Positions 22,501 through 61,581 of a stretch of 64,000 bases of DNA are shown piece by piece. The translations under genes were made by a program, and so were the position numbers. The notes under the pieces were generated by a model. It searched no databases, had not been told where the DNA came from, and saw only the letters and a program-made list of their open reading frames with translations. The stretch is from the NCBI RefSeq assembly GCF_052425735.1, contig NC_135763.1:33294001-33358000 (forward strand). Direction: 5' to 3'. Position 1 is the stretch's first letter; each line of letters starts with the position of its first letter. This DNA is from Oculina patagonica. Lineage: Eukaryota.

Positions 22501-25006
22501 GTTTGTTTACATAAATAAGCGTGTCAGATGCTCCTCAGTATAGTGTACCTAACATCTTACGAATTCTTTAATCTAAGGAGAAAATTTTGGCGATGCATTC
22601 TCGTCCCATTAGCTCTTTTCGTTTCTCTCAGCCGGCAGTGCCTTGGCACGAGAAACGAAAGGCTATTGAGGGCCGCCAGTCTTGAGATTTCCAGACGAGA
22701 AACGAAGGGCTCTGGAGATTTCCAGTCCTAGATTCTAGGACTTCTTGTCTTCATGTATGCAGTTGTGATGTTTCTAAAAACTGTGAGAGAGTCCTGGCGT
22801 TTTTACCTCCGTTCAAGATTCCTTTGTTTCAAACAGTTAATCCAAAAAATGGAATAAATTTAAAAATCTCATGTCCCCATAGCCCTATGTTTCTTTTGCC
22901 AAGTCCCTGCTTAGAGAAACTAAAAGGGCTGTGAGGACGCGAATGTCAGCGGTGGCGCCCACTTACCTATGCATTCTCCCCAGACTCCATCCCGGTCATA
23001 ATTCATGGAGATTGAACACCATGGGTTATTGTGGTCCAGGTAGGTACACGTGTAGTGCATTATACCATTGTATTGGAAAGGAAACACACAGCAGCCTCCA
23101 TTAGCGTTCCCGCCCTTGGTCCATACGCCACATGTTCCTAAACAAAAGAAAAAAAAACAATATAAGAACTCTACGACGGTGGTAGAACAAAGCGAATTAT
23201 GGAAATCATTCGCGACAGCATTCAAAATTTAAAACTTGGCAAACAATGACTGATTTGGCTTTGCGATACAGATTCTCGAAAACAGGAAGGGAAGATAAAC
23301 AACGATGGCGAGGATGGAAAGAGATTACAATAACGAAAACAAACACAGATTTCATTAAAACGTTGTGCAGCAAGAAATTCTAGTAGGAAATTGTTTTCTG
23401 TTATTTATTAAGCATTTATTTCAAATTAAGAACCGAAAGAAGACATTACTTTTTTTCTACACTGCAAATATGAGTCACATCAAGGACATTGAGGCCATAA
23501 AATCGTATACTGACCATTTTGCATTTCCGGTAAACACTCTGGACAACATTTCCACTTCTTCTTGATAGGCTTGTCGCAATTTAAATCCGGGCATTCTAGT
23601 TTGGAACACTTCACGTGACCATGCTTACATCGACATTCCGGAATACAGGGGCCTGGGGACCAGGCATCGCCGTGATGGCGGACGACTCCTTCGTACGTGC
23701 AATCTGTTTGAAATACAGGAGCGCAAAGTGTAAAATAACAGCAGTATTCACAAACATTTGATCAGCAGGGATTTGCTGAAGCAAAGGCATATTAAAAATC
23801 AGGAAAGATTTATTGCTACTCGACATTATCAATCAATCAATCAATCAATCAAACTTTATATATAGAGGGTTACACGTAATAGTTTTACAACTAATAAATT
23901 TGTGGCCCTCTCTAATGTACTAAAAAATTAAGAATTTACTATAAACAATAATCTAATTTAAATTTTTTTTAAAATTTTCGGGGTCATCGTGACTCCATTA
24001 TCAAGGGACTTGTTTAATAGCATGCAAATCAGGAAAAGCTACAAAATAAGCATAAATTACAATAAACGGCCTAAACAAAGACCTTGGCGCGGCTTTATTC
24101 AGTTTGCACGTTCAGTGCTGGCTTACGCATGCGAATGTATAGCATTTCTTTTACGAGGCAATCAAACTTGCTGTTACATTTCGCGATGACGTGAAATTGC
24201 TCGATGCATGCATGCTTTTTAACAAGTCTCTTGATAATGGAGTCACGATGACCCCGAAATGTCGCGCAGCAATAAATCTTTCCCGGTTTTTGGTATTCAC
24301 GACTAAACAAGAAGGTTGTCCTATAAGAACCTAGTTGGCCGATCGGACGCTCTACCGCTCATTCTCGACCCCAGAGCCACTAGTCCGTCTTAGCCGGCTG
24401 AGTCTGTGCACAAGAAACAGGTGGCTCTGGGGACACGTGATTTGATTGGCTAGATTCTAACAAAGAAAGCTTCAAATCTGACCAGTCAGGTCTGTTTTAA
24501 ACTTTTGTATAACAAAGGGATTTTAAGACGGTTCACTTGATTGGCTGTTTCTTTTGTTAAAATCTAGCCAAATCAAATCATGTTTCCCAGAGCCACTTGT
24601 TTCTTGTGCACAGACTCAGCCGGCAGAGAGAGACAAGCGTCTCTGGGGACGGAAATGTCAACAACTGAGCTACATGAGACTCGTGGAATACTATATTGAG
24701 CGACCGCTGAACGATCAACTAACTGAACTGAAACTTTATTTACCCTCGGTATTATGAGCCGTGTTAGAGCCGTGTTAATATGCTAATGAAACCGAGCATT
24801 TCACAGTATACAACGCAATGCGCAAAGATAGACCACAACAACGGGAACTCCGTGCCCTACTCTTTTTGATAAGTGTGTGGGTTCTTTAACGTCCCCTGCT
24901 GATTATAACACTGAAGATGCAGGAGACGGGGCCTACAGTTTATCATCCTTATCCGAGAAGACTAGAATATCTAACCATTTGCAGATGTCATTGCAAAGGC
25001 AGCATA

Positions 25007-39019: not shown

Positions 39020-42000
39020 TTACCACTGATTCCCTCTGTAAGGAGTTTGTCTTGGGAAAATTTATGGTTAATAGATGAAACAAGAGATGTTATTCTGGAT
39101 AAATAAAGTTTTGAACGCGCTTGAAAAAAACGGTCTTTAAAGAAACAGCCTTTTCACTAATGAAAATCCCCACATCAAAACACAGGTACACTAATTCATT
39201 TTATGTTCACATTATAATTGTCCTACAATATAGAACGATTAGTTTTCCGTGATATACGTGCAATTTACTTCTTTTAAACAATATTGCATGCTTTGAGCTA
39301 CTCGTAATTACCTTAATTACACTACATTGAAAAAAATGTATTATGATTCGAGAAAATTAATTAAGGTACTTTAGAGGAGCAAAGGTATGGATGATGTATC
39401 TCGTTCGAAGGAAGGTTAGAACTTAATTGTTACCTCTTTGATGTTCAGTTTACTTTGGTAAACTTTTAAGAATGAAGGTTGAACTATTAAGTTTGGCAAA
39501 CCATTTAGTTTGAAGATTGATTCATCATTAGGATAACTTCATGGAATGGCTAGAGTGGCTCTATTTATTATGTTATCTTTCAATTTCCTTAACTGACTTA
39601 ATTTAAAACTTTGTACGACTGCAAGTGAGCTCGACGATCTAACAGGCGTAAAAGACAACGAAACATAAATGCAGAATTATGCACGTTAATGGTCACGAGT
39701 AGATAGAAATCTAATGGTTTTTGATGCAGGCCCTAGAACGTAAATTTCCCAAATAATCATTTTTTTTTTTTCTTTTCACTTGGAGTGGAATGGCAAAAAG
39801 TTGCTCTTTAAGTGAACAAACGAACATACAGTGTAAACTGTTATCGAGCAAAATAAAAAAAAATTGGAACATAAAAATAAACTTAAAGCTATATAGTTAT
39901 TAGCAAGCTAAGTATAGAGCAAAAACAATAAAAATTTAGGTTTCCGTTACAAACCTTATTAAACATGACAAAATAATTTTAGTAGCAACGAAAGCGAGGG
40001 AAATAATTAAGATTTATTTGAATGTCACACAAAAGGGTTCCTTACAGCTAGAAGCGCATCTTGACTGTGGGAGTGAGAGTTTTAACCAACTTGAGCGCTT
40101 TGTTGATACAGAAAATATTCCTACATGATCCTATTCCTACATGACAGTTTATTTCAGGTAGTCTGTTCAGGGTCTTAGATCATGAAAAACTGAACAGCCA
40201 TTCTAAAAATCGCTTGATTTTGTTAGTCAACTGACAATGTTAACAAGACAATACATGCATCGAGTCTAGCTTATGTCAAGATTCCCGAGATTTAAGAGCC
40301 TGGAACAGACAGTTATTTTAGATTAAAGGTTGTGGTTATAACTGAAACAAACTAATTTATTTACGTTCTTGGTCTTTACTTTGAACAAAGCTTGCACTTG
40401 AGCCTGCAGTTAGTCATCAGCCATTGCTCTCTACAGCGGTCATCAGGGTAAATTCTGCATACGCTATCATCAGTACAAGTTTGAGGCACTGCTAAATTGA
40501 AGAAAAAAATTAAAAACGGTAAAACAACTGTATTAACTGAAACCAAAAGGCATAATGGCAGTTTCATTGATAGGCTGGTTTAAGTGAGAAAACTTAACAG
40601 ACCAGGTGAATCAAAATAATTAATTAATTCGACCCATTCAGCAGATGTTAATTAACCATTACCCTGCGTAATCGCGGAATATCGCCTGATACTTAGCCGA
40701 GCGGCTAAAATTAGACGATATTCCAAAAGATTGAGCAAGATAATTGTTTTATTATTCACCAATTTTTCATGGAGGACATTTTGCAGCTAGAAAAACTATG
40801 GTTATGCAGCGCTTTAGAAGACTTCGAACAAATCTTGGCAGCCTATATTTATCGCAGGATATCGGTTATGTTCGGATGACAGATAACGATAACATTTTGA
40901 CCATATATGGGCAACGCACGCATGTTTTTTGCAAAGGTCTTAGCCAACACAACATCTAATGAAGACTTACAAAAATTTAAAGATAGTTAAAAATAAAGTA
41001 TTATAAAATCGACATATTATCTTACCACTGCTGTAGGCTGCAGGTGCTGGTGGAGCCGGGGCAAGAGGAGCCGGCTGCGAGTAAACTGGGGCGACCGGAG
41101 CAGCCTGAGCAGAGGGCTGGGTCTGAGGAGCGGCTTGGTAAGTATTGACTGTATTCTGAGGAGCGGCTGACGCTTGTGTCTGTGGAGCGGCCTGTTTTTG
41201 TGTTGAAGTAGTTGCATTTTTCTCTGCTACATCCTGGGAGGTTGACTGCTTAGGTGCTTTTTGGGAAGACGCTGAATCCGTTGCATTCTGGGAAGTTGAT
41301 GGCTGGGAGGCGGCTTCATCTTGGTGCTTGGCTTGTTTATCTGTGAATGAAAAATCAATTACGTTATTGCATATCACTTCAGAGTTATTAACTTTGTTCT
41401 GGGGACCACTACGTTTATAAACGTAGGATATATAAACAGTCAACAAAGTTTTGTAGTTTATACTTGAGGGGAGTGGCTATTTTCAGGGAAATGGTTACTT
41501 TATAAGATGTCCAGAAGATCTCGGAAATTAAGATAGAACCATATTAGGCACATGATCATACCTTCAGAATTCGTATCAGACTTCTGTGCCGCATTCTCTA
41601 CGACTACCTGCCCCTTAGATACTTTCATCATCTCCTTATGATTACCCTCGATGACTTCCACGCTTGGCTTGGACGCGAACTTGACGCCTTTCTCAGGTAC
41701 ATCAATCTCAATATTCTCGATCAGGGGCTTGGTGACGTTTTGCTTCAGCACCATCAAAGGTTTCACGAATCCTTTGGTGGAATTGCCCTTTGGTGGCATG
41801 ATGCGGATTTCTTGGATCTGTGGTACGCCATCTTTCAATTTCGGTTTCACTCGGATTGTGTATTTTGCCTCCAGAGGTTTGGGACCCGAAGCAGGAGCGA
41901 CTAGGTCCGCCTGAAGCTCGGTGACATCCGGAGCATCGTCGGCACTCTCTGTGGCATTCTTCAGTTCAGGATCCGTGGCATTAACACCTTCGTCTTTGGT

Positions 42001-43666
42001 AAGTTAAAAGAAGTTTGTTTCATTCGACATTCGATTAACAATATTGTAAATTAAACAGGATGATGCACCCATAGCGCAGAATGCATGGACATCATTTATT
42101 ATTCAGAATCAGTGAAGCGGTAAATTTGAACTCGAAAGCGCCCACAAGTGTTGATAAAACTTGCTTCTCTATGAGTTAAAGAAGTAAAAATCTTACAACC
42201 CACGCGCAGATTTTTGAAGAGGAATGTTGTAGCTACATTTCTAGCTATAGGCAAAAACGAAGAAGATTGAACATCAAAATTAATGTTTTTTGCACTTGAA
42301 AATACAGTAAAATTCAATTACTTCAGCGTGGGTCGGAAAGGCACAAGGCATTGACCGTTCCAAAGACTAGGAAAGGAGACGGGTCGAGTAGTTTGTGACT
42401 TCTTTTATTTTTTGTGAAAGATAAGTTTGCGTTTTGAGCCTAGTAAGAGCTTATCTCTGGTTTAAGTACCGTGAAACGACAAGGAGTATTTCCCCGGGTA
42501 AAGTAACGAGTCGCAGGCTGCCCCCCCCCCCCCCCCCCGAGTATTTACTTGCCCGGTGCCCTTATACAAGGTTTGATTTGCAATCCGACTTTCGGGAAAA
42601 TATATTCGACTGATCACTTTAATCCTATTTCCCTTTCAGTCTCTTCTCCTTGCTGTGAGGATCAATCTGCCATTCATTAATTATTGCTGTCCCCGCTTAA
42701 TTACAACAAGAATGGCGAACACTGAATTTAGCAGCAAGGGATTTTAAGAAACAAGCTAAATGGCTTTCGAAGGATTCTCTAGACTTAAAAATTTGCTCTA
42801 AAAATATGTAAGTTATGCTCTGTGGGAATAAACCTTAGTAGGACAAAAATCCTTTTTCGTTTAAAAACAAATAACCAAGCTTTTTTATGCTTGCAACAGG
42901 TGCTGGTGTGAAACTCGACACGCATGATCAGATGTTATGAAATTTGCGAGCGAAAAATGTGAGGAATTCCCTTTGTCTAAACTCTCCAAGTTATAACTAG
43001 AAAGTAAAATTTTAACACAAATCTAGGTTCCTTCCAAATTTTGCTGTTTTCTTCAACATAATTAACCACTTTCAGCAAAAGTCCAAGCTTTCTCTTGAAA
43101 TCATCGGTAAATCTCTATTCACTATTAAATTTGAAAAACTATATCCTTTAAACTGACGAGGCTGTCGATACACTGATTTTAACTGCGGCGGCAGTTTTAA
43201 TACATCTCTTTAGCAGGGCGGGTCGAATTTAAAGTCTATTCTTCTTGTTCACCGAAACAAGAAAAACCTTTGATCGGCGTGACCCTAAGTTTCGCGCACA
43301 CCCGATAAGCCAAGTTCGGAACTTAGGATGACTAATGTCCTCTTGCCTCTTGTTTAGCAATTTGGTCGCAGCATTTAATCGCATTTTTCAAATTTGTCCT
43401 AATTCTGATCCTATCCGCTAGTTCATGTGCGACGTTCTTTGCGTATGCCTCACTTAACGGGTTATTTTTGTTTAAATTCTTGAGCTCTTAAGGTAACTTA
43501 CAAAACTGACCCGTTGAAAACATGTTATGGTGTCGTGTCCAAATTATTTTGACTTCAAAACTGGTAAACCAACTGAACAAATTCCACACTTACCTCGAAT
43601 AACCCTTTGAATATTTCTACCCTCGATCGTCGCGAAGCAGATAAACAAGAGCGCAAATTTCAACAT
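39020..43666 (-). CDS. Gene C: secreted protein, SP - 'KP' beta module - Q/A/S/P-rich - ShKT; about 315 aa; paralog of the 3' half of gene B
   Basis: Join (minus): 43594-43666, 41562-41993, 41026-41340, 40380-40491, 39020-39035 (GNQW*). Alternatively ends at the TAA at 40376-40378. AATAAA at 38749-38754. Confidence 0.83.
40380..40491 (-). CDS. Gene C exon: ShKT domain
   Basis: CTDDSVCRIYPDDRCREQWLMTNCRLKCKLC; tandem tagcag acceptor. Confidence 0.9.
41026..41340 (-). CDS. Gene C exon: Q/A/S/P low-complexity region
   Basis: DKQAKHQDEAASQPSTSQ...APAAYSS; 315 nt. Confidence 0.85.
41562..41993 (-). CDS. Gene C exon: uncharacterised 'KP' beta-rich domain
   Basis: KPLEAKYTIRVKPKLKDGVPQIQEIRIMPP...KPLIENIEIDVP...KPSVEVIEG; 432 nt. 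Confidence 0.88.
43594..43666 (-). CDS. Gene C first coding exon: signal peptide
   Basis: aaaATG, MLKFALLFICFATIEG/RNIQRVIR, /gtaagt phase 1. Confidence 0.85.
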
Positions 43667-45139
43667 TTTGTTAAGGAGTAAAAATCGTTCTGTTTGTGGA
43701 TAATGGATTTCTTCGCCAAATGCGCGGTTGAAGATGTCAGGTCACGAAAATTTTAGAAAGCTTTTTAGTTCGACTGGTGACCTTTCTGCTTAATGAGCTG
43801 GAAAAATTTCATTGTTACTTTGAAAGGTCTTCTAGTTGTATATTATGGTTTTCACTAGCAAAAATAAGCTCATAGCCAGTAGAATTCAACATGAAAGTTG
43901 CTAAAACCGCCAGGCTCAGGAAAAAAACGTAGACGCAATTCCACATTTTTAATTAACTCAATTTCGTTCTGCGAAAATATATTAACGATAGAATTAGCAA
44001 TAATTTCAAATAAAGGGTGTTATTAATTCCGCGAATTGTAGGGTTTGGGGGAACAACTTATTGCAAGTAGCGTCCTGTATCAGGGGTATATAGGGTTCTG
44101 AAAACGATTTCAGAAAATTTCTAGGGCGTCAATAATAACTAACTCAACTCTGACTTATAAACAAGGCCTCATTTTAACAGCTTGCAAGCTCTTACTGGTA
44201 TGTAAACTTACTGCAGGGCTAGAAGGGAAAATCAGCGAGTGTCACTGTCGCCTTGTTTAACACTCGAGGATTTGTCAACGACGCGTGCTTATAAAATGTC
44301 GCGTAATTCAACTGCAAAGTCGTTTACATAGGGTGATCTTTTATTTAAAGAATAAACATGCATTTCACAAGCAATAAAGACTTTACCAAATCCAAAAATA
44401 TAACATTCATAGAATAGCTTGTGTTCGATTTATAATGGCCTCGTTTCACTAATTAATACTGACTACTATATATCAATCTTAAAGTAAATTAATAGAGTAC
44501 CGAAGCGCTATTTTATCGGTAGACAACGGTATACGTCCGTTTCCCTAAGCTAAGAAACTAAGAAAAATAAACCACAGCTAGCCTCCTAATAGGAGTAAAT
44601 TAAAGTTAAATCTATTCTACTGCAGCATCGAAATCGAAATCCACATAGCAGACTCTGAGTTGTCAATTGAACTTGCCATGAGTTGACGTGACATGAACTT
44701 CAAGTTTTGACTTCACGCAGGAGCCGGGTAATGTGCTCCTGATTCATGTAAGAAGTAATTGTTATCTACAAGTCTAGAAATTAGCTGCTTCTGGTGGATC
44801 ACGTGACTGAACGTAGTGAGCAGTCGTGTCTAAAACCTGAGAAAGAGTAGAAAACAAAAATTAGCATTTATGCTTGGTTTGTGAAGGCTCATGATCAGAA
44901 ACTGTTTCCCATCCATTCCCCCTTCCCCCTCCCCCACCACCACTAACACCTCCTCCGATCTCCCTCATTACTTCCTATGCATTTTTTTATTTCATAGCAT
45001 TCGAAATTGAACAACTTCAAAAATGTAGTTTATATTCTTTCATGCCTTCCGACTTATATTTATAACAAAGTTTGCAAATGCTCTGGCAATGGTTCATGTT
45101 TACTTTACTTTACATACAAAACCAGGCGTACCTTTTTAT

Positions 45140-45243
45140 TTAACACAGTTTACACATGCTCTTGCAGTTGGCCATCAGCCATGGGTCTGCACAGCGGTCA
45201 GCGGTATATGGTGCGCATCTGCCGTCATCAGTGCAGGTTTCAG
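45140..45243 (-). CDS. Gene B last coding exon: ShKT domain 3
   Basis: ETCTDDGRCAPYTADRCADPWLMANCKSMCKLC*. Confidence 0.9.
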
Positions 45244-46827
45244 CTGCGAACAAAAGACAAATTGGAGAATAATTAGAAAGTTTATCCAAAGTTATGTATT
45301 TGGTGATTTACAAGGACATAGCTGATCAGAAGCTGAGAGCTGAGGTACATCCAAATACATCTACAGCTACGCATAGAAAACAAATGTTCCTCTAGTTTTA
45401 ATTGAAAGACTTGCCAAAGAATTTGGAACCATTTGACTTTTTTAACTTAAAGACCAGCTACATGTGTCATTTGTGTATATCATAGGGATTTTAACGACAT
45501 ACTTTTAGTATAATTATCACAATTTAAAGATTGTAATCATGGGTGTATTAATTAGTTTTAGTGTGGTGGTTTAAAGCATCTGTACATTATTATACTTTTA
45601 CTCATAATAATATCGTAATTTACTTTTTAATAGTTAATGATTTATTATCTATTTAATTTCTCTTTGTTTTTATACTTGATTTTAATTACTGTCGTGCGCT
45701 TTATACATGAGCCTCTGGCTCGGATAGGGAGGGCAACCTCATCCCGCGTTATGTCTCTNNNNNNNNNNNNNNNNNNNNNNNNNNNNNNNNNNNNNNNNNN
45801 NNNNNNNNNNNNNNNNNNNNNNNNNNNNNNNNNNNNNNNNNNNNNNNNNNNNNNNNNNNNNNNNNNNNNNNNNNNNNNNNNNNNNNNNNNNNNNNNNNNN
45901 NNNNNNNNNNNNNNNNNNNNNNNNNNNNNNNNNNNNNNNNNNNNNNNNNNNNNNNNNNNNNNNNNAAGACTTACTGTTGGTATAGGCAGCGGTCTGGGTG
46001 GCTGAAGCATCAGGTTGAGCAACTGGGGCAGCAGCGGACTGATCTGTTGTAGCAGCAGCGGCCTCGGTAGCTGGAGCGGTGGTCTGTGCTGCGGTTGCAT
46101 CCGTCTGGGTCGCTGTAGCATCAGCCTGAGTTGCTGTAGCAGCGGTTTGTGCAGCCTGCGTGTCCCATGGAGACTGGGTCTGTGTGTCGGAGTGATATGA
46201 AGCTGTGTCCTGGGGAGCGGCTTGTGTGGTGGCAGAGGAGGACTCGGTCTGATCGGTGGCGGTCTGATCGGTGGCGGGTTGAGCGGCAGAGTCTTGTTCA
46301 GGCTTGGTTTCTTTGATTTCTTTTTTCGAGTATAAAAAATAGGTGATTTTGTAACAAGGGTAATTGGGGAATACCTGAAAGCAACCTTTAGACTCTGAAA
46401 GCGACGTAGACGAGTACTGCATGCAATGTTGTGTTTGTCTCATTCAAATGGTACACTAGGGAATGAAATAAATGCGACTTTGGAGTGGAGGTCAGAGGGG
46501 AGGAGAAGAACATGTCGACCAAAAACAACGTAGAGGAGGATGGATCGAACAGCTGGGTGACAAAGGAGGGACTGAATCGAAAGGCTGAAAGGAGAATATC
46601 AAAGCTATATTGTCTTATGGCATAGGGAGATCTAGGTGTAGGTAGGAAAAGTGAGGTTTGTATAAGATTAGAGGTTTTTGTTTGGAGCCTCTTTTGTTTG
46701 TTATTCACTTCCGCGTCGCTGCAGTAGTTTCCAGTTTCCATAACTGAGCTGGCCTTTCCTATAAGCCTGGTGGTTTCTTGGAGGTCTCCTCTCTACTACT
46801 GTTATATTACTGTTATATGCTAATAAA

Positions 46828-46874
<47 letters not shown>

Positions 46875-49800
46875 GATGAGTTTCCTTAGAAACTAATCAC
46901 ATGCATGATAAAATAACTAAGGCATACCTTCAGACTTTGTCTTGGACTTCTGTACCGCGGGATCCTCCACAATCGCTTGTCCTTTACTCACTGTCAGCAT
47001 CTCTGTGTGATCTCCTTCGATGACCTCCACGCTTGGCTTTGAGCTGAATTTTGCACCCTTTGGTGGGACATCGATTTCAATATTCTCAATCATAGGCTTG
47101 GTGATATTTTGCTTGAGTACCATCAGTGGTTTAACATATCCGGCGGTTCCAGCCTTGTTTGGAGGCATGATCCGGATCTCCTGTGTTTGTGGCACACCAT
47201 TCAACAGTTTTGGCTTTACTCGGAGAGTGTATTTGGCTACCAGTGGTTTTCTTCCAGGGGCCGGTGCCACTAAATTGGACTCTAGCTCTGAGGTCTCCGT
47301 GAGGCTCTTCACCTCATTCGGGTAAATCTCCGTGGTCTGTGTCGCTGTAGCGTTCTGTTGGTCCTTGGCTGTAAAATAAGTTAAAAAGAAACGGGTTTAG
47401 ACATTCATTTCCTTGTTGAATAGTCATGGAACTGACACGGTTTGTACATGATACAAACAGCGTATTGCGTATCGAGCCCCTCGTCGCTTCCGATGAATGG
47501 CCATCAGACCGGCCTTATTGGCCTTGCGGCGTATGTATTGCATAAAAAATGTCATTGCTCTTCAATATTTGTTTTTGAAGGAATGATATTTGAGAGTTTT
47601 TTACGTGCAAAAACCTCACTACACGCAATCAATCAATCTGTTAGTTGTCTGTAAAAAAAATGCTGCTCAAGGTCAAGAAGACATCATTTATTGTTTGAGG
47701 TAGTTGCATGGTTAATGCCTCTCTGGATCTACCACTGCTGGCCATAGACAGACAGCCTCCCTATTGATGACTAGTTAGACAACACAGGTTTTCAAGTTAG
47801 TCCGGTTTTGATCATAAAACTCTTGTAAGCAGTTGAACCCAATTGCCTTACCCTTGCAGAGGTTGCATCTCTTAGGACAATTAATCTGCCACCAGGTGTC
47901 GTTACAGTTGGAGTATCCGTAGGCACAATCTTTGTACAAGTCATCGCAGTAGACATTAAACACATAGGGCACTGTAGACGAAAAGTAGTAAAAAGTAGAA
48001 TGCATGGATCAATTTTAGTGGAAAGAACCTAATGTGTTAGACATAAGTGCCAAACGGTACGATTTAATGACAACTCGGCACACAATTTAAGGTGGCTGAT
48101 AACTGTTTTCAATAATTTACAGACCTTATACTTCGATGGGTCAGTTCTAAAACACTTTATCAACTAACATTACAGAAATGGTATGAAACAAATGCCCTAT
48201 CACTGGTCGACAAGTTGTGATCATTTTCTTGACTGGAAAATGCCTAAAACCGTTCTCAGTCACCTTAAATGGATCTACAAAACCTTTGCTAGATCGGAGC
48301 TTTTCTCTTTCTCTCTTGCTTGCTTGGTCGCTTTTCCTACTAGTAAGAATTCTTCATTACAATACCGTGAAAGTATGGAGAAGGGAATTTTCTACAGGCA
48401 GAATCATATCCCCCGTCTTCCATCAACGTAGGCCCCATGCGTGGGGTGAATGCGTGACAAAAGAGGTACTTACATGGCGGTGCCTTTGCCAGGTCGGGAC
48501 ATTTCTTGCAACCTTCTGGCCTTGGTTGTTTTTTGCAACATGTCCAGCTGTAATCCGACTGCTCAGGCTGATCCAGTCCTCCTGCTTGTGGATCTACTGT
48601 CACATCTTGGCTAAAAGACTGTCCTGTAGACGTCAAATCCACGGTACCTGCACCGGACAAAGTCACACTCGCGCCGTTAGGGTTAAATCTTCCTTGCATC
48701 TTACTTGACTCTTCCGAATTGACAAGATGAAGTCTGTGCTCAGAAGTTACCTCTTCTTGTGATAGGTGGAATGGTGGCAGAGATGAGACGCTCGAAGATG
48801 ATTCTAGTGATTCATCTTTAGATGGTTTGTCTTGGTGCAGCCCGGATATGCCAAGTGAAGACAATATCGTTTGTGGATTGGATTGATTTTGTGCGAGTGC
48901 TGGTGTTTCTGTCTGATTTTGCAGTGTTTGTGTTAATGAAGAATTCTGTGACAGAGACGCGTTCTGTGAAAATGACGAATTCTGTGATAATGACGAATTC
49001 TGTGACAGCTGCTCTACCAGTGACTGATTTTGTGAAGTGATGTTACCTTGTGCAAGAAAAATATGAACATCTTGTTTCTACTCATTAACTAACATTATGT
49101 CAATAATGAAGTGCACTAACTATAATATGACGAACCACCCAAATTCTCAAAATCAGCGTTCAACACGGAGGTGTATTTTATAAAAAAATGTTTCGTAAAA
49201 AGCTCAGAGTAGATGGCTGTTCATTTAACATGGGAACAAATCATAGTAGGGGAAGAACCGCCAGTTCCGCAGATTAGAGAATTGACAAAGTTCCGTCTCA
49301 GCAAAAATCAGCACTTGATCAGTTTTTACTAGAAAGTGCCATTGTTGTATGAAACTACAGTAAAATGCCTTTTGCTTAATTCTTGAGATCAAACAACTAA
49401 TTGTTTAGCGTCCATGTTTTGGACTTATACAACATTACCTGGTGCAACAGTCTGGTTGGAGGTGTTATTTGCTCCAGCAAATGCTCCAACCATGATGGTT
49501 TGATTTGTTTGGCTCACATTAGCCACGGCTGGTTCAAAGGTGTTATTAGTCGCCAGTGACACTGTCTGATTGATCAGTTGGATGGTCTCATTTGCGGCAG
49601 CTTCTGGTTGAGCAGCCACAGCTTGTTGGGCTGCAACAGGTGCTGCAGGCTGCTGAACAGCGGCGGCAGCAGCCTGTCCCACTTGAGGTACCGCTGGGTT
49701 AGCTGCTGCAGCGACAGCCGGAGCTGCCACTGCAGGCGCAGCTGGTTGGGCAGCTGCGAATGCAGCTGTTGCCTGAGACGCACCTTGAGCTTCAGGTGTA

Positions 49801-52800
49801 GCAGCATCAGGAACACCGACGGCGGGTGCAGTAGCAGCAGCAGTGGAATCTTGTGTACCGGTAGCCTGCTGTTGTGCACCGTTCTGCTGATTGGGGTCAG
49901 CAGCTTTTCCCTGGTCAACATAATGCATATTGACAGGGTGCTGCTCGGGGTATAGGAAAAGCCAGTTCCTATAATTGCCTTTGTAGTCAAAGAGGCTGTA
50001 GCTGGTTGTCGGCGGGGGTTGGTCGGCATTGGAACTTTTAGTTGGTGAATAGTCAGCTGGACGGCTGAGGAAGACAACGTCACGTCTGCCGCCATCGATA
50101 TTGTCTCGCTTGTCGACGACTTTAGAAGCGTGTTTGCTTTTGTGTTTCTTGTGTTTCATGCCAGTAACTGCATCCTTTTTGTTTCCCTTCTTGGAAATTC
50201 CGTGCTTCTTGTCCCCTTTTTTGTAATACAAGACTGCTGGAAGCTTCATGAAATCAGCGCCTACAATGTAGGTAGCCATTGCGTTAGAAATGCCTCTACA
50301 CCGCAGGGGTAAAGTTCTAGCTATGCTGGAGAGTGGTCTAGATAAACATTGAAAACATATCCGAAAAAACAAAGACACGAGAAACGAGCTGGAAGGCTAA
50401 ATAACGCGATAGGGGAGTCACCCGTGAGTATGTAGACAACAAAAACGCTCTGTTGCTCAAGACGCGTTACGCGTAGCTATGCGTGAAGACGAATATCTGC
50501 GGGTAAACTATTCCTGACGCAATATGGCACTTACCTTCATATTCACAGAGTCTGCACATTCTGGGGCAGTTCAGCTGAACCCATTCAGAAGCACAGTCCA
50601 GATCACTATACTTGACGCAATATGAGTGGTTGACGCAGAAGCTTCCTTTCGGAGCTGTGAGAAGTTTTAGAAAATGAAACGGCTTAAACTCAGGTCAAAG
50701 AGACTATATGGGTATTCGAGCAAGTGTACTAGCAACGACTTAGAGAATACCGTAAAATTCCGGTTATAAGCCCCCCGCTTATAAGCCCCCCCCGGTTATA
50801 GGCCCATCAACCTGGAAACAAAAAAATACATCCAGTTATAAGCTCCCGGATATAAGCTGATACAAGCCCTCCTCTCCCGAATGACAGTACTGAACAGGGC
50901 TAAATGTTGCATTTTTGTTTGTTTTAACTTAAAAGCGTATTTCTATCAACACTCCTGAGGCTCTTTTTGAAACGTTTTTTTCCTTCCGCTTATAAGCCCT
51001 CCCGAATATAAGCCCCTCCGCTTATAAGCCCACCCAAAAACCCTTACGAAGTTGTATAAGCCCAAGGCTTATAACCGGAATTCTACGGTACTCTCCTGCA
51101 ACGACTGCAGAAAGGCAAAGAAGGTATGGGTTACATAAAACAGATATATAAGGACAGATTTACCATTGTTTTTCTTGCTCCCACTTTTATGGACATGTTT
51201 GGATTTCTTGATAGCTGTTCAAAAAAATAAGAAGTAAAAAAGCCCAATGACTATAATCCATCTTAGCTTTTCAGAATCACAAAGACGGCAAGAAAAAAAA
51301 GTAAAATACAGTGTCGCGCTAAGTAATTGTAATCTATCTTTTTCTCCTTTTGTTTACATCAAGTACTAAAAGCGAGTACTGATCAGTAACAGCAAATTCC
51401 GATAAAAAGTCTTGCTTTTAAGTTTGGCACACGCAGCACTATCGAAAAACTAACTATCGAAAAAGTTTACTTTCTTGATTGCAAGCATTAATTTACTTGG
51501 CTGCGTTTTCGGATCTGCGCATTAATATCAGTATGGAGTTTTTTCCAGCAGTCCAATCCGAGTGTTAGGATTTTCTCTTTAAAAGTTACTTGTTTATTTA
51601 GCGGGTGAAAACCTTTTATGTCGCTGTAAGACGGCCATCATCATTTTTAGAGAACATTTTTCACAGTTTCGCGGATATCTAAATGAGCCAAACAATTACT
51701 AATCACAACTGTCATTTTCTTGAATACTCTACAAATTAAATTTATTGTGTAGCCATTCATTACTCGTGATCTCATTGAGAAAACGGGTGTTTTATTTGAA
51801 AGCTAGACGCCTTCAAATGAACTAACAAGTACCCGTGTGATTTTTGATCTTATGCTGAGAAATTCCAACAAGACCCGTAACGTTTACAGCGCCGAGCCCA
51901 AAATATAAGTCCTGTGCTTACATTTATTTTTATTTTATTTTTTTCGAATATGGTGGAGGTCAAAATGATATCTCCCAGTTGATGACTCTGTATTCTCATG
52001 CACCTATCTGGTTCACAATGTATTTAAATTATAAGGAGTATTTAAATCGTGATCACTGTCACGAAAAAGGGCTATAGTCTACTTAGTAGGATTTTCTTTT
52101 TTTATGTTTTTTTTTTAAAGAACTGAACTTAAATAGAACTTTTTATTTCGAATTGTGAAATTATCTATGCTCTATATCAACCTTGAAAAGGTTTCTTGCC
52201 TCTTGTTTGGCCGGACGCTATTCAAAATAATCTCGTAGAACATCTGAAAGCGTTTCTGGATTTTAAACATATCCTGGCTGTTCCTTTTTAGTCAGTCGAA
52301 CTCTGGACGAAAAAGCGAGTGCAATGTGGCGTTTAAAGGCCCGCATCTCAGGTCACTGCGCAACACTGAGCTACTGAGCAATCGTATTTTTCTCCACTTA
52401 ATCACAAAAGAAATTGACTTAGGCATGGTTTTAATGCCAGTTAGTCTGAGCAGTTTATAGAGAGGCAGTGTAAACAGACACATTTTCTGGTCGACTTTCC
52501 CAAGATATAATGTGTGTATTTTTACAAACTATGTCCTCCGAGATGTGTTGTTTTTGTTAAGGTTAAAGGCGAGAACAGGTATCACTGATCGGTTTATGTA
52601 AACTTAAACGGGTGCTGTTCTAAGAAAATGGCAAAACCGCCTTCATAAATTATTCAAAGCGATGAGAAAGAAACCATTTCGCCTGTCGAACAATAAAATT
52701 GCAATACATGAAGAATTCCTGTATGAAACCCTGCGCTTCAACGATCGGAGACAACTTTATGGCCGATTGGCGTTGAAGCTCAGAGCTGAAACTTTTCACT

Positions 52801-53041
52801 GTGTTTTTGCCACTTGAATTAACCTTATATACCATTAAATATATCAGTTATATAGACCAACGCAAGAAAGTAAAACAATAAAGTCAATAAATCCGATAAT
52901 TGAATTAAATAAGTCCAAATTGAAGCGCGTCAGTGGATAAATGTCGTATTTACCTTTAGCTTCCAAGAGTCCGTACTGTAGTCCCAAGAAAAGTAATACA
53001 AATAGCGCCTTTATGCCGTATCCTGTCGTCGTCAACTTCAT
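45140..53041 (-). CDS. Gene B: secreted mosaic protein, SP - K/H-rich - ShKT - K/H and A/Q-rich - SQNSS repeats plus 'GxG' module - ShKT - 'KP' module - T/A/Q-rich - ShKT; about 887 aa
   Basis: Join (minus): 52954-53041, 51164-51214, 50535-50654, 49439-50260, 48474-49046, 47852-47971, 46928-47368, 45975-46319, 45140-45243 (TAA). All phase 1. Acceptors at 50260 and 46319 are less certain and an N-gap lies in the last coding intron. 3'UTR intron 44837-45131. Confidence 0.82.
45759..45965. other. Assembly gap (N run)
   Basis: Ns, in the last coding intron of gene B. Confidence 1.
45975..46319 (-). CDS. Gene B exon: T/A/Q/D low-complexity region
   Basis: KETKPEQDSAAQPATDQTATDQ...AAYTN; /gtaagt donor; weak aaag/ acceptor. 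Confidence 0.78.
46474..46600 (+). mobile_element. Decayed RTE-like LINE 3' ORF fragment
   Basis: ATLEWRSEGRRRTCRPKTT*RR resembles the RTE C-terminal W.P.G.R.RGRP..TW motif. Confidence 0.55.
46828..46878 (+). repeat. (GAT)n microsatellite directly after AATAAA (retroposon-tail-like)
   Basis: taataaa(atg)n. Confidence 0.85.
46928..47368 (-). CDS. Gene B exon: 'KP' beta-rich domain
   Basis: KPLVAKYTLRVKPKLLNGVPQTQEIRIMPP...KPMIENIEIDVP...; 441 nt. Confidence 0.88.
47852..47971 (-). CDS. Gene B exon: ShKT domain 2
   Basis: PYVFNVYCDDLYKDCAYGYSNCNDTWWQINCPKRCNLC; 120 nt. Confidence 0.9.
48474..49046 (-). CDS. Gene B exon: SQNSS(L/F) repeats, 'GxG' module, CCx7CxxC motif
   Basis: GNITSQNQSLVEQLSQNSSLSQNSSFSQNASLSQNSSL...HRLHLVNSEESSKMQGRFNPNGASVTLSGAGTVDLTS...CCKKQPRPEGCKKCP; 573 nt. 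Confidence 0.85.
49439..50260 (-). CDS. Gene B exon: K/H-rich block, aromatic segment, A/Q/P-rich block, N-glycan sequon cluster
   Basis: Within ORF 49425-50378; ttgtag/ acceptor preceded by ctaac; /gtaatg donor; 822 nt. Confidence 0.83.
50535..50654 (-). CDS. Gene B exon: ShKT domain 1
   Basis: CVNHSYCVKYSDLDCASEWVQLNCPRMCRLC; 120 nt. Confidence 0.9.
50750..51088. mobile_element. TA-flanked MITE (Tc1/mariner-pogo-like) with internal TATAAGCCC repeats
   Basis: ta|ccgtaaaattccggttataagcc ... ggcttataaccggaattctacgg|ta. Confidence 0.82.
51164..51214 (-). CDS. Gene B micro-exon (AIKKSKHVHKSGSKKNN)
   Basis: 51 nt, aacag/ and /gtaaat, phase 1-1. Confidence 0.75.
52954..53041 (-). CDS. Gene B first coding exon: signal peptide
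   Basis: MKLTTTGYGIKALFVLLFLGLQYGLLEA/K, /gtaaat. Acceptor at 53050 implies an upstream 5'UTR exon (donor about 53597). Confidence 0.85.
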
Positions 53042-56161: not shown

Positions 56162-59100
56162 CTGGTCAAAATCATAAAAATCATGCTGTTATTAGACAGT
56201 GAACAGTTTCAAAAGCGTATTGCCTTTGATCAAAATTAACGACAGCCTTTGTCGCAATCAAAGTTATCTTAAAGGTTTTTACACCGCCGACCGGTTAGCT
56301 CAGTTAGTAGAGCGACGGAGGGCCAACTTTTGCATCGCTGGTTAAATCAACTCTTAAGCCCGGGCTAAACAAGGATGAGAGTCGATGAGAGTTCAAACTC
56401 TCACTCTCGTTTGGCATAGTACTCTCATGCACTCTCATCGACTCTCATGCGCTCTCATCGACTTTGAACGTGCTCAGATTTTTCGTGTGAGTCGATGAGA
56501 GTTTGACGGACTCTTGTTCTCGTTTGGCCCGAGTTGATGATAGTCGATGAGAGTTGAAGAAGCTCTCATGAAAGTCAACTCTCGTCCTTGTTTGGCCCGG
56601 GCTTTAAAAATGCCGACTAGCGCGGATTTAGCTATTTCACTTACACTAGTATCGTCATCCTCGTCACTGTTATCATCAGCTTCGTCGTCATCATCATCAT
56701 TGTTATCGTCATTATCTTCACTGTGGGTTTCTTCTTCTTTGGGCACTGGCTTCTCATCATGAGCAACTTCCGGTATCAACACAGGTTTGTCCTCCTTCTT
56801 GTGTTGTTTGACTTTAGCTGCAGCTTGTTTCACGGCATCTTTTGCCTTCTTGGTCATTTTCTTAAGGACTTTTTTCAGTTGCTTTGTCTTCACTACGTGT
56901 TTGGTCTTGTCCGCTTGCTGCTTTGTGTTAGCATTAGTGAAATGTCTCTTTTTACCCATGGTGATGTGAGAGTTGCCCTGACGTTCTGAAAGTTAAAACG
57001 TTCAGTTTAATTTTTTTTTTAAACTTACTTTATGCCTGACACTAAAATCTTTTCAGCGCCAAACTTGAAATGTACATTTTTGTTGCTGCTCTTACATACA
57101 GTTTCAAATTGTCGTTCTGAAAATTATTTATTATTATTATCTCCCGATGGATGATAGTTTTCATTCTCATCACTTATCTGTTTGACTCAACCGCGGTCAA
57201 ACGACAGAAATATGCAAAAAATAAGACAAGTACTGCAAAGATAAGGTTTTAATTTTCACAGTTCAAAGTTCGATACATAACCGGCATCCTAAGGGTTTAC
57301 TAAGTTTTTTGGAGCTTTACTAAAAACGTTCTACGTGTTTGAAAAAAGCGATATGCGGACTTGTAGCTACTTGTCGGCGCCATTTGTCAGAGCACCTTTG
57401 GTTCGGATGCGAAACATTTAAAAAGTAAAAACACTCGTTTACCTGAGGTAATGGGATTATGCTTTCACTCGGCAAGTATTTTTATCTATCCTTGCTCGTA
57501 CTAACACTTCAATACGAACAAAAAACGCCGAATTGGAAAGAAAAGTTGCCTGAGACGTTTGACCGCGGTGAACTGTTTGACACTGTACTGACAATGTAAT
57601 GAGAAATGATTTTATCCCCGTTCACATTTAAAAGAGTTTGCCACACTTAAGAGTCCTTTTACTAAAAGTTACAAATGTAATATTCACCCATACTCAAAAC
57701 AATAACTCGTGTTCTCTTGTGAGGATCGTCTCTTTACGTTTAGTTTGAAGTTTTACTTTTTGTGTCTTTATTTTTTTCTTAATAGTTAAAGTTGACGTGA
57801 GAAAACACGGCATTACATGTTATGAAAGGATGACAGGACATGAATTAACGTGATGTGAGTGGCATAAAATGACCTGACTTGACCTGACATGGCTAGACAT
57901 GGCACGATATGACATGACTTTGATATGATAAGACATGACGTGACGTGAACTGAGCTGAGCTGAACTGACCTAGCTTGATCTGAACTGACGTGACGTGACG
58001 TGACATGACATGACATGACATGACCTGACCTGACTTGACATGACATGACATGACATGACATGACATGACGTGACGTGACGTGACTGAGCTGAGCTCTGAC
58101 CTAGCCTGATTTGAACTGACGTGATGTTACATGACATGATACGACGTGACGTGATGATTAAAACAAACACCGTCATATGGCTAAACGCATAAATGAGTCA
58201 CAAAAGTTAATTTTGCACTGACGTAGCTGAGAAGATGATGTAGCTAGCAATTCTATTTTCTTCATACTTACCGTAACCACACGCTCCGCATTTGCTTTTA
58301 CAAGTCTCCCTGACCCAGCGGACCATGCAAGCTGACGCGGCAAACTTCTTACACACATCTAAATCTTGACAGCCAATGAATACACCATAAGGAACTAAAG
58401 AGGGATACGAAAAATATGTTTCTTTCATATGTCAGCCAAAATTGATCTTCAGTATGCTAGTGAAATACCTGGCCTATTCATTTATTCGTTCATTTATTCA
58501 TTTATTCATCGACTTACTTATTAACTTATTTAATGTACTGACTTATTTATTGACTTACTTAGTGTATTGACTTACTTATTGACTTACTTAGTGTACTGAG
58601 TTACTTATTGACTCACGTGGTGTACTGACTTACACTTATTGACTAACTTGGTGTATTGACTTACTTATTGACTTACTTAGTGTATTGACTTACTTTTTGA
58701 CTCACTTGGTGCATTAACTTACTTAATGACTTACTCAGTCTACTGAGTTACGTATTGACTCACTTGGTGCATTAACTTACTTATTGACTAACTAAGTGTA
58801 CCGAGTTACGTATTGACTCACTTGGCGCATTAACTTACTTATTGACTTACTTAGTGTACTGAGTTATGTATTGACTTACTTGGTGTATTGACTTACCTAG
58901 TGTATACTGACTTGCTTATCAAGTTAGTGTATTAACTGACTTATTAACTTTCTTAGTGTACTGACTTACTCGTTGACTTACTCGGAGTATTGACTTACTT
59001 ATTGACTTACTTAGTATGTTGACTGACTTACTTATTGACTCACTTGGTGTATTGACTTCCTTAGTGTACTGCATGACTTATTTGCTTGTTGAACTGACTT

Positions 59101-61581
59101 ACTTTACGTAATGACTTACTGTCACAAAGTTTGCAGCTCTTTCTGCAGTTTTTCTGCGTCCATACATCCCTACACTGTCCGGTTGCGGCATAATTCTTGC
59201 AGTATGGTTGGTAATCGTCACATGGAAACAATTTCGCTGCAAACAATAGAGTTTGTTGTGAACTTCAATTATCGTTAATTTTGCCATCGCTATCTATTCT
59301 TGATACCAGACCCCTTCTCTTTTGCGAATGAAAGAGATTCTAGCTGGGGTCCTGAGGTCCCCGTATACACCAACTAATATTATTTCAGTAGTTAAACCGG
59401 GTTTGTATATGTTATGAAAAGCATTCAAAATTGTTAATTTAGTGGTGGTCATGTGTCAGTTATGAATTCAAATCACTGACAACAAAACTCCTCACCTTTT
59501 TCTTCTTTGGTTAATTTTAGGTCATCCATAGCTTTCTCTTGGGCTAAGTAAAAAAAATTAAAATAATTAATCATTGTCGAAAGTAAGTCTGTGTGTGCTT
59601 TGGCTTTGAATTCGCATGCCGGGCTATTTAATTGGTCCAAGAAGCTTGCGAAACTTGGCTAGTAGCCATTAACAACGCACGTGCTTTTTGTTCAGCCAAT
59701 CAAGAGAAAAATCGAAGCCAATCGAGGGTCGGTTCGATTTGTTGTGGCTGTGGTACCTTGTGACCTCGTGTGAGGTCCTTTACAAACCTTCACCTGCCCT
59801 GTGAGCAAATATTTTTAATCTTTTGTTTTTGCTTGAGTTTTAAAAGCTATTTGCATTTGCTTTGGTTTTGCATTGCTACGCTTAGTGATTGGCTTAAAAA
59901 TCTCACGCCACTCTCTCAGCCAATCAGAAATAAAACCAAAAGCAACTGTGACTTGCTCGCACACGTTTTCCCGCGCTTTCCGCTGGCTACATGTATTTGC
60001 TTCGAGTTTTGATTGGTTCACTGGTTTCTCTGTGTGTTTTGTAAGAGGGCAGAGTTATTACTTTGGTTTTCGTTTAACGACATTCAATTGAAACCACTTT
60101 ATTTTTACCTACCTGTTTTTGGCTTGCTTGCTACAGGCATTACTAGCGCCGCTGTGAAGCACAAGAAATAAAATCGTTAACTAAACTTAAGTTAAGTTTT
60201 GTGTTATTTTGGCTGCGGCTGTTTTGAAACTGCGAGTAATCAAGGATTTGATTACAATAAAAGAAATCCGGTTATCCGGGACATTAGAGGTACGTGTACT
60301 TAACATTTTCAACAACCGTACGTTGAAAATATCAAGTTTAAAGAATCAGAGAGCATAAATTGATTATACCTGCCATCGTCGGTGGCCTGGGTTTGTTATC
60401 GGCTGCCTTGCCTCCAACAACGAATGTTGCCGGTCCTATAACACCAAAAAATTGCGTATTTCATCACTACGTGTTACAGATATGGATAGGATGTGGTTCA
60501 ATTTCACCCCTAGTACAATCTGGCATTTTCTTTTATGTTATATTTGTTATCATATATTGCCATACACGTGCACCAAAACAAAAGAAAATACCAATTTATA
60601 CCAAGGGTAAAGACACAACACATTCGATACATTAAAGGGATCATTAAATCATCGCAAGCTGACCTGGCGGAGGTCCTTGTACAAGAGCCCCTGGTTCCTG
60701 TGCCCCTGTGTTTCCCTGAGGCGCATGCAAGCTCATTTTGACACCATTAACCTTGATTTCTTAAAAAATAAGAGAAAATTTGCCATTAATTCGAGAGGAA
60801 GAAAAGTGAATGGATGATCCAACTGAAAAAAACGTTTATTTGTATATGCAATTTACTTAAGATCCTGTGAATTAAGCTGTCTTTAATTAATCAATAGTAA
60901 CTGTTTCTTCAAAGAACTCTGAGAAAGTTTTTTTAACCTTCCCAAGGGTTATGTTAACAGCATTTTTTTCACAATTGCGAACGCCTGCTTTTGTAATACG
61001 TGGCTAGTTCTTTGATCGAAAGCTTACCTGGTAACTTTTTCCCTCCTTTTCCAAGAACCATGGCAAAAACTGAAAATAAATCATATTAGTGGTGCCGTGA
61101 GTGAACTTCCTGTATGGATAGTGCTACAGTATTCAGTCTGCAGCACAGTTAGTTTAGATAAGTGATTTCAAAGACCGGACCAACAGCCTGGTAAGCTAAT
61201 GTTGGTTAAATGTGTTTGAAGAAAATCGACTGAATTTAAATGATGGCGTTTTAATATGAGCAGGGACCACTCATTCGATTCGTTCGTGGAATCCACCTGG
61301 AAGGAAGGAAAGTGCAAAGCCTAAGCTCGAGCTGGCTGGCGAGGAGTTGTCAATGGCCTATACGCTATCTGGAGCAACGGGCCTACGTTAGTATTTAGCT
61401 ATTTCTGCATGGCCTTAATTACTGAGGGTGGGGTGGGTGGGTCAAATGAGATAGATGTACAACATAGCAGCTGTGGCAGAGGTTTCCCGCCTTCGCAAAG
61501 CGTACCTGTGTGTTGTTGCTGAGCATAAACACAGCACGTGATTGACAGCACAGCAGCCAATAGGAGCTGTCGTCTGTCCAT
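55820..61581 (-). CDS. Gene A: secreted protein, SP - four micro-exons - 2x ShKT - Lys-rich/Asp-rich/Lys-rich charge blocks; about 397 aa
   Basis: Join (minus): 61506-61581, 61028-61069, 60370-60435, 60113-60151, 59496-59543, 59120-59236, 58272-58394, 56645-56985, 55820-56161 (TAA). Frame continuous, 1194 nt. AATAAA at 55411-55416. Confidence 0.83.
56358..56603. mobile_element. TTAA-flanked MITE with gatgagagt repeats
   Basis: ttaa|gcccgggctaaacaagga ... tccttgtttggcccgggct|ttaa. Confidence 0.75.
56645..56985 (-). CDS. Gene A exon: Lys-rich then Asp-rich block
   Basis: ERQGNSHITMGKKRHF...KKVLKKMTKKAK...EDNDDNNDDDDDEADDNSDEDDDTS; phase 1-0. Confidence 0.87.
57830..58158. repeat. Pentanucleotide simple repeat (TGACA/TGACG/TGACC)n
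   Basis: Read directly; produces spurious SCHVM ORFs. Confidence 0.92.
58272..58394 (-). CDS. Gene A exon: ShKT domain 2
   Basis: PYGVFIGCQDLDVCKKFAASACMVRWVRETCKSKCGAC; 123 nt. Confidence 0.9.
58488..59105. repeat. Degenerate minisatellite (TTGACTTACTTAGTGTA-like)
   Basis: Fills the intron between the two ShKT exons of gene A. Confidence 0.9.
59120..59236 (-). CDS. Gene A exon: ShKT domain 1
   Basis: CDDYQPYCKNYAATGQCRDVWTQKNCRKSCKLC; 117 nt. Confidence 0.92.
59496..61069 (-). CDS. Gene A run of four micro-exons (61028-61069, 60370-60435, 60113-60151, 59496-59543)
   Basis: VFAMVLGKGGKKLP / GPATFVVGGKAADNKPRPPTMA / AALVMPVASKPKT / AQEKAMDDLKLTKEEK; 42, 66, 39 and 48 nt, each AG..GT and phase 1-1. 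Confidence 0.7.
61506..61581 (-). CDS. Gene A first coding exon: signal peptide
   Basis: MDRRQLLLAAVLSITCCVYA/QQQHT, /gtacgc. Acceptor at 61591 implies a 5'UTR exon (donor about 62764). Confidence 0.85.

Follow-up and report, generated by a model that had tools for sequence, protein, structure and literature searches.

A 64,000-nucleotide stretch of the genome of the stony coral Oculina patagonica (NCBI RefSeq assembly GCF_052425735.1, contig NC_135763.1, positions 33,294,001 to 33,358,000 of the forward strand; hereafter the window, numbered from its first letter) carries on its minus strand two tandem genes that share a cysteine-free domain of ~105 residues, which we refer to as KP. The upstream, long gene is LOC144656666, whose product XP_078373034.1 (P0040, 754 amino acids) is listed as 'uncharacterized protein LOC144656666'; the downstream, short gene encodes 311 amino acids. 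Both proteins begin with a hydrophobic N-terminal leader and contain N-x-S/T sequons, and both genes finish with the same cassette: the KP domain, a spacer rich in A, Q, S, T and P, and a C-terminal six-cysteine ShKT domain.

The two KP domains are clear paralogues. The original prediction had aligned them by hand, without gaps, at 73 of 95 residues, and recomputation over the core from KPL to VE returned exactly this figure, against a maximum of 18/95 in 10,000 shuffles; for the whole exons, BLASTP gave 92 identical residues of 136 (E 3e-62). The exon boundaries given there, 41562-41993 and 46928-47368, were confirmed as well, with AG acceptors preceding 41993 and 47368 and GT donors following 41562 and 46928 (in-frame reference translations, window:41563-41991:- and window:46929-47366:-). 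Neither exon encodes a single cysteine, as had been claimed, and the domain is net basic to neutral, with a high content of Lys, Pro and Glu. The upstream copy matches residues 460-605 of XP_078373034.1 at 100% identity. Protein searches and searches with a 41-sequence profile found two KP copies only in the 529-Mb O. patagonica assembly.

The notion of purifying selection on KP amid diverged flanks was borne out when the two genes were compared. In the core, the proportion of nonsynonymous differences (pN) is 0.154 and that of synonymous differences (pS) is 0.80 by the Nei-Gojobori method, so that pN/pS is ~0.19. This pS lies above the Jukes-Cantor limit and is saturated, and we therefore give pN/pS, which is far below 1, rather than a true ratio of substitution rates (dN/dS). 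Protein identity between the genes amounts to 77% in the KP core (95 residues) versus 58% in the ShKT unit. At the nucleotide level, identity is 72% for the KP exons (over 324 nt) and 73% for those of ShKT (over 104 nt), and no significant nucleotide alignment was obtained for the spacer exons or introns of the two genes. The low pN/pS, taken with the unalignable spacers and introns, shows strong, long-lasting purifying selection on the KP domain.

Relatives of the domain extend across the Anthozoa. Of the 26 clusters returned by an exhaustive hidden Markov model search of 1.84 billion representative proteins, 22 reached E <=1e-10; word-indexed searches yielded additional close relatives. Every named member is anthozoan, from the Scleractinia (Acropora, Montipora, Oculina, Porites and Pocillopora), the Actiniaria (Nematostella, which has a single gene of the family, XP_032236476, and Actinostola) or the soft coral Xenia. 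The long Oculina copy is 63% identical to that of Nematostella, and the short copy of the window is 33-42% identical to Xenia-type copies. Across an alignment of 41 sequences, 13 columns are at least 90% conserved, all within the motifs LKQ, E-x-I-x-I-x-x-P and P-x-V-E-V-x-x-G, and the few insertions and deletions are confined to two loops and the C-terminal tail. Conservation from stony coral to soft coral implies that the constraint has acted since the hexacoral-octocoral split, which published dating places in the Cambrian or earlier. On this comparative evidence KP is a genuine, unannotated domain family, evidently under strong constraint and, among named members, restricted to the Anthozoa. 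Its bearers appear in databases as 'uncharacterized', 'mediator of RNA polymerase II subunit 15' or 'brain acid soluble protein 1 homolog'; these names are misleading, since they derive from the low-complexity spacers. Xenia-type KP copies were also observed on the ENA contigs L003 (6001-6738) and L004 (5840-7042), one of them from a Tara Pacific metagenome, with VWC or fibronectin type II (fn2) exons 2-5 kb downstream.

The original prediction could match the stretch to no known domain, and neither could we. In Pfam, no match to the KP region was found with the two exons, with seven full-length homologues or with the 41 aligned domains; the best score went to Thi4 (E 0.026, 14 bits against a cut-off of 26), and no family recurred in more than 2 of the 41 members. 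In a profile search of the PDB no chain scored better than E 0.46 (a mitochondrial ribosomal protein) and the matches were inconsistent, and a feature search of the ESM Atlas gave no usable match.

Structure prediction was informative once more sequences of the family were used. With only the two paralogues as input, AlphaFold2 gave an uninformative model with a predicted local distance difference test score (pLDDT) of 44.7, whereas with the 41 sequences it produced an ordered, all-beta model of medium confidence (pLDDT 65.8, blocks at 79-85, predicted template-modelling score 0.55), and the five models agreed (pLDDT 58-66). The strands fall at all five of the KP-led segments in which they had been expected from the alternation of hydrophobic and polar residues (LEAKYTIRV, IQEIRIM, MVLKQN, LIENIEIDV and SVEVIE), and a sixth was added at HKEMM; the prediction of disorder that had been named as a refuting outcome was not seen in this model. 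The model was compared with five structure libraries (Foldseek on the PDB, VIA-align on PDB representatives, AFDB clusters, AFDB Swiss-Prot, ESM Atlas). Apart from one orthologue, which is 87% identical (Stylophora-type; 'ShKT domain-containing protein' in UniProt) and came from the AFDB clusters, these returned only immunoglobulin-like (Ig-like) sandwiches of unrelated families: GH2 domain 2, Asf1, GbpA, FN3 and MG domains, at Z 5-6.9 and template-modelling scores of 0.5-0.58, with the second domain of GH2 glycosidases at the top (Z 6.9 over 97 residues). According to the model, KP likely folds as a cysteine-free Ig-like beta sandwich, a fold class that is provisional and implies no homology, since the scores lie within the range of unrelated sandwiches.

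The features of the two genes and of their surroundings are collected in Table 1.

Table 1. Features of the window that bear on the two KP genes (window coordinates; X1, a public sequencing run with spliced contigs)
Feature	Position	Strand	Basis and remarks
Short gene exon 1, start codon and leader	43594..43666	-	start at 43666; ends in phase 1 before GTAAGT; collinear with P0004, P0044, P0052
Short gene exon 2, KP domain	41562..41993	-	phase 1-1; conserved core ~41596-41904; X1 joint 41562-41340
Short gene exon 3, low-complexity spacer	41026..41340	-	phase 1-1; X1 joints 41340/41562 and 40491/41026
Short gene exon 4, C-terminal ShKT-type six-cysteine domain and stop (40378-40376)	40376..40491	-	pattern scan; orthologue collinearity
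Long gene 5' half	48460..53041	-	tblastn of P0040; boundaries approximate; includes further exons
Long gene signal-peptide exon	~52952-53041	-	tblastn of P0040
Long gene first ShKT	~50533-50655	-	tblastn of P0040
Long gene large exon, conserved N-module and A/Q/P-rich stretch	49431-50396	-	tblastn of P0040
Long gene second ShKT exon, directly upstream of the KP exon	47847..47972	-	tblastn; boundaries approximate
Long gene KP exon	46928..47368	-	phase 1-1; conserved core ~46965-47273; matches XP_078373034.1
Long gene T/A/Q-rich spacer exon	45975..46322	-	donor GTAAGT at 45974; tblastn; X1 joints at 46322 and 45975
Long gene last coding exon, third, C-terminal ShKT domain and stop (45142-45140)	45140..45243	-	X1 joint
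Assembly gap (N run)	45759..45965	.	in the intron between long gene spacer exon and last coding exon
Other ShKT six-cysteine units	3519-3617, 7141-7233, 7604-7696, 8808-8900, 13176-13271	-	regular-expression scan
Other ShKT six-cysteine units	47856-47948 (in the second ShKT of the long gene), 50545-50637 (in its first ShKT), 58279-58371, 59124-59222	-	regular-expression scan
VWC and fibronectin type II exon pair	23516-23701 and 22956-23132	-	54-66% identical to Xenia C-terminal half (range for both pairs)
VWC and fibronectin type II exon pair	2341-2535 and 1685-1855	-	54-66% identical to Xenia C-terminal half (range for both pairs)

The short gene was modelled as four exons joined into an uninterrupted open reading frame of 936 nt, collinear with the transcript-derived orthologues P0052, P0004 and P0044, and all of its introns are in phase 1. 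The N-terminus encoded by exon 1, MLKFALLFICFATIEG, looks signal-peptide-like, and the short form has a low-complexity, partly acidic N-flank. The spacer consists of A (24%), Q (16%), S (13%), P (13%) and T (10%). Within the spacer exon, at 41302-41304, contigs from the public runs X1, X12 and X14 have 39 extra letters, which makes them 13 codons longer than the assembly, in frame.

All exons of XP_078373034.1 map by tblastn to 45143-53041, and the introns around the last three coding exons of the long gene are in phase 1 as well. The run of N between the last two of these exons begins 9 nt past the GTAAGT donor at 45974 and stops long before the acceptor at 45244 is reached. A spliced contig of X1 links 45975 to 45243 across it with GT..AG ends, and the reference protein reads through the same join without a break; because the spliced joint spans it, the gap is intronic and touches no coding sequence and neither KP exon. 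Over the two genes, the X1 joints 40491/41026, 41340/41562 and 45243/45975 and the exon edge at 46322 are all four of GT..AG type on the minus strand, from which it follows that both genes are transcribed.

Several other observations concern the same region. In the long gene, X1 also joins 45130 to 44834, marking an intron in the 3' untranslated region (44835-45129, minus strand) 10 nt past the stop codon, and the intron between its KP and spacer exons contains a long ATG/ATC trinucleotide microsatellite (46828-46880). Summed contig depth at 40550-40949 and 45550-45749 is hundreds-fold above the flanks in the DNA runs and is raised in X1 too; these stretches are likely dispersed repeats within introns, the second of which adjoins the assembly gap. 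A second unannotated conserved stretch, LPAVLYYKKG ... FDYKGNYRNWLFLYP, occupies residues ~88-200 of P0040 (exon 49431-50396, minus strand) and can be recognised in the orthologues from Acropora, Montipora, Nematostella and Actinostola.

In both genes the six cysteines of the C-terminal unit are spaced C-x5-C-x7-C-x8-C-x3-C-x2-C, as is typical of ShKT. A regular-expression scan located these two units at 40385-40477 and 45143-45235, along with nine further occurrences elsewhere in the window. The window is a tandem cluster of secreted ShKT-bearing genes, with 11 units on one strand.

The gene structures and the phylogeny of the domain together suggest how the pair arose. Since phase-1 introns lie on both sides, each unit of the cassette is a symmetric, shuffle-ready exon. 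In a maximum-likelihood tree the stony-coral sequences form one clade (97/99 support) separate from the sea anemones, and within it the short-form genes make up a 100/100 clade that contains Porites, Pocillopora and Oculina. The position of this clade inside the stony corals means that the short gene postdates the split from sea anemones and predates the divergence of the two main stony-coral lineages; by this topology, the short paralogue arose in stem Scleractinia. In our reading it is a tandem copy of only part of the long gene, taking in the three final coding exons, and has a signal-peptide exon of its own; the locus offers a clean example of module duplication via phase-1 exons.

The leader, the sequons, the ShKT knot and a fusion of KP with VWC and fn2 in Xenia (described below) lead us to read KP as an extracellular binding module of the matrix or mucus. 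In the mechanism that we propose, KP would be an independently folding extracellular domain within two tandem secreted paralogues, active in binding or adhesion within the extracellular matrix or the surface mucus, and the flexible, fast-evolving and probably glycosylated spacer would keep it at a distance from the ShKT terminus. Of this picture, the conservation, the selection, the exon structure, the expression, the taxonomic range and the absence of KP from databases are shown; the beta-sandwich fold is a medium-confidence prediction, and we infer that the proteins are secreted and glycosylated and that KP binds. Taken as a whole, the reading of KP as an Anthozoa-restricted, folded extracellular domain that serves in binding or adhesion, with the short gene as a partial duplicate, has in our estimate a probability of about 0.6.

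A number of points weigh against this reading. No fold match rises above the level of unrelated sandwiches (Z <8, Foldseek E >=0.03), and the model behind the searches is of medium confidence. The signal peptides were assigned by visual inspection. In the spacer, A and Q outweigh S and T (23% S+T), so that it is not a classical mucin core and its O-glycosylation is only putative. The Pfam ShK family (PF01549) scores 18.1 and 18.0 bits on P0009 and P0014, against a cut-off of 20.9, and its best stretch on these two is the internal ShKT unit rather than the C-terminal one; the Montipora orthologue carries a precomputed PF01549 match. Finally, searches by accession and locus identifiers, and by product name together with Pocillopora, found no paper on the proteins.

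A more ambitious version, in which KP is a new extracellular fold or superfamily from the anthozoan ancestor, a matrix- or collagen-associated binder that soft corals fuse to VWC and collagen-binding fibronectin type II domains and whose short paralogue was recruited to the skeletal matrix and calicoblast or to mucus, strikes us as unlikely. The family is new and lineage-restricted; its predicted fold and its protein context are ordinary in kind. The narrower proposal that the short paralogue is a component of the skeletal organic matrix, secreted by the calicoblast and binding matrix or mineral through KP, draws on the origin of the short form in the scleractinian stem, its observed occurrence in stony corals only and its probably secreted product with the partly acidic N-flank. 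KP itself, however, predates skeletons, for sea anemones conserve it equally well and a soft coral has it too, and it is not acidic. Moreover, no member of the family is named as a skeletal-matrix protein, and the Swiss-Prot fold search gave no coral skeletal protein, which leaves a skeletal function quite improbable.

The ShKT units invite a different explanation, in which the protein is a toxin or cnidocyst precursor: ShKT would be the active channel-blocking peptide, and KP and the spacer a carrier or pro-region that is cut away as the protein matures in the glands of venom or stinging cells. ShKT domains are named for a sea-anemone potassium-channel toxin, the 11 tandem ShKT exons on one strand resemble an expanding secreted-peptide cluster, and the supplement of a Nematostella matrisome study lists some ShKT proteins among 'putative venoms' (PMC12549020). 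Against such processing, no dibasic site precedes the ShKT domain in either gene (junctions AAYSSAVPQTC and AAYTNTETC), and the long protein has three ShKT units among other conserved modules. The residues that separate the third cysteine from the fourth (REQWLMTN / ADPWLMAN) also lack the Lys-Tyr pair that ShK uses. KP is, furthermore, better conserved than ShKT, although a disposable pro-region should be the less conserved part, and we regard a toxin precursor as improbable. Two other possibilities concern the physical state of KP. One is the assembly module that the original prediction had tentatively suggested. Its alternating hydrophobic/polar strands, free of disulfides, could pair at their edges and two co-expressed paralogues could co-assemble, so that KP domains might pair or polymerise by beta-strand association into a fibre or gel; with one KP per protein, though, polymerisation would need a second interface, and self-assembly seems to us doubtful at best. 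A homodimer prediction for the core (score 0.01) is evidence neither way, as the alignment was not used and the monomer itself reached a pLDDT of only 31-38 in ESMFold. That same ESMFold score, the two-sequence AlphaFold2 result and the Lys, Pro and Glu content would all fit a secreted protein that is intrinsically disordered, in which KP is a region of conserved linear motifs and not a folded domain. Yet the periodic hydrophobic pattern is kept over ~105 contiguous residues from corals to soft coral with few core indels, AlphaFold2 confidence climbs to 66 with 41 sequences, and the disordered flanks of the two proteins have diverged past alignment, all of which makes a disordered KP very unlikely.

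The secreted mosaic proteins of anthozoans hold many unannotated parts, an obstacle to interpreting the proteomes of coral matrix, mucus and skeleton. KP is among the better-conserved of these parts, and although no general concept is changed by it, a family definition would correct the names of its bearers and aid proteomics. The single Nematostella gene, in addition, makes a knock-out test possible.

Favouring the reading of KP as a folded extracellular binding module, we can set the coral proteins beside several known systems. For the unit next to KP, the comparison is with the ShK family PF01549, whose six-cysteine spacing is common to the C-terminal units of both genes; this concerns the neighbouring unit and not KP. 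For KP itself, the nearest class is that of the Ig-like sandwiches (GH2 domain 2, Asf1, FN3, MG), which are often extracellular spacer or binding modules. The KP model is of similar size, is all beta and superposes on them over 80-98 residues (Z 5.2-6.9). The class is defined by two packed antiparallel sheets of about seven strands; the KP model has six strands. Sequence identity is 1-13%, with no family standing out and a topology that is unassignable at medium confidence.

Xenia sp. LOC124444299 (XP_046850837.1) contains a true KP homologue, ~33% identical, followed by an ShKT-like unit (profile match at E 1e-5 in the whole-library search and 7e-13 locally). Its KP lies within a large exon with low-complexity flanks, whereas in Oculina KP, spacer and ShKT are on separate exons. 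A single compact gene of 3 kb thus encodes KP in Xenia together with ShKT, VWC and fibronectin type II domains, all of them modules of the extracellular matrix; in Oculina the VWC-fn2 exon pairs belong to separate neighbouring genes, on the strand of the KP genes and 17-38 kb away (Table 1). An annotation read-through of two genes was considered for the Xenia fusion and rejected, as the gene covers 3 kb in all and its introns are short.

Among described architectures, the one nearest to the spacer and ShKT unit that close the coral cassette is that of the TES-120 surface-coat mucins of Toxocara canis (MUC-1 to MUC-5), secreted proteins in which a signal peptide precedes a low-complexity core rich in Ser/Thr, with ShKT domains at its flanks (PMC3611597). 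These mucins have no counterpart of KP, their cores are far richer in Ser/Thr than the A/Q-dominated coral spacers, and nothing in their sequences beyond the ShKT motif relates them to the coral proteins. What the coral proteins share with the TES-120 type is a likeness of design rather than membership: the leader and the ShKT end are present, and the spacer between them, with 23% S+T, 13% P, 24% A and 16% Q, is only partly mucin-like.

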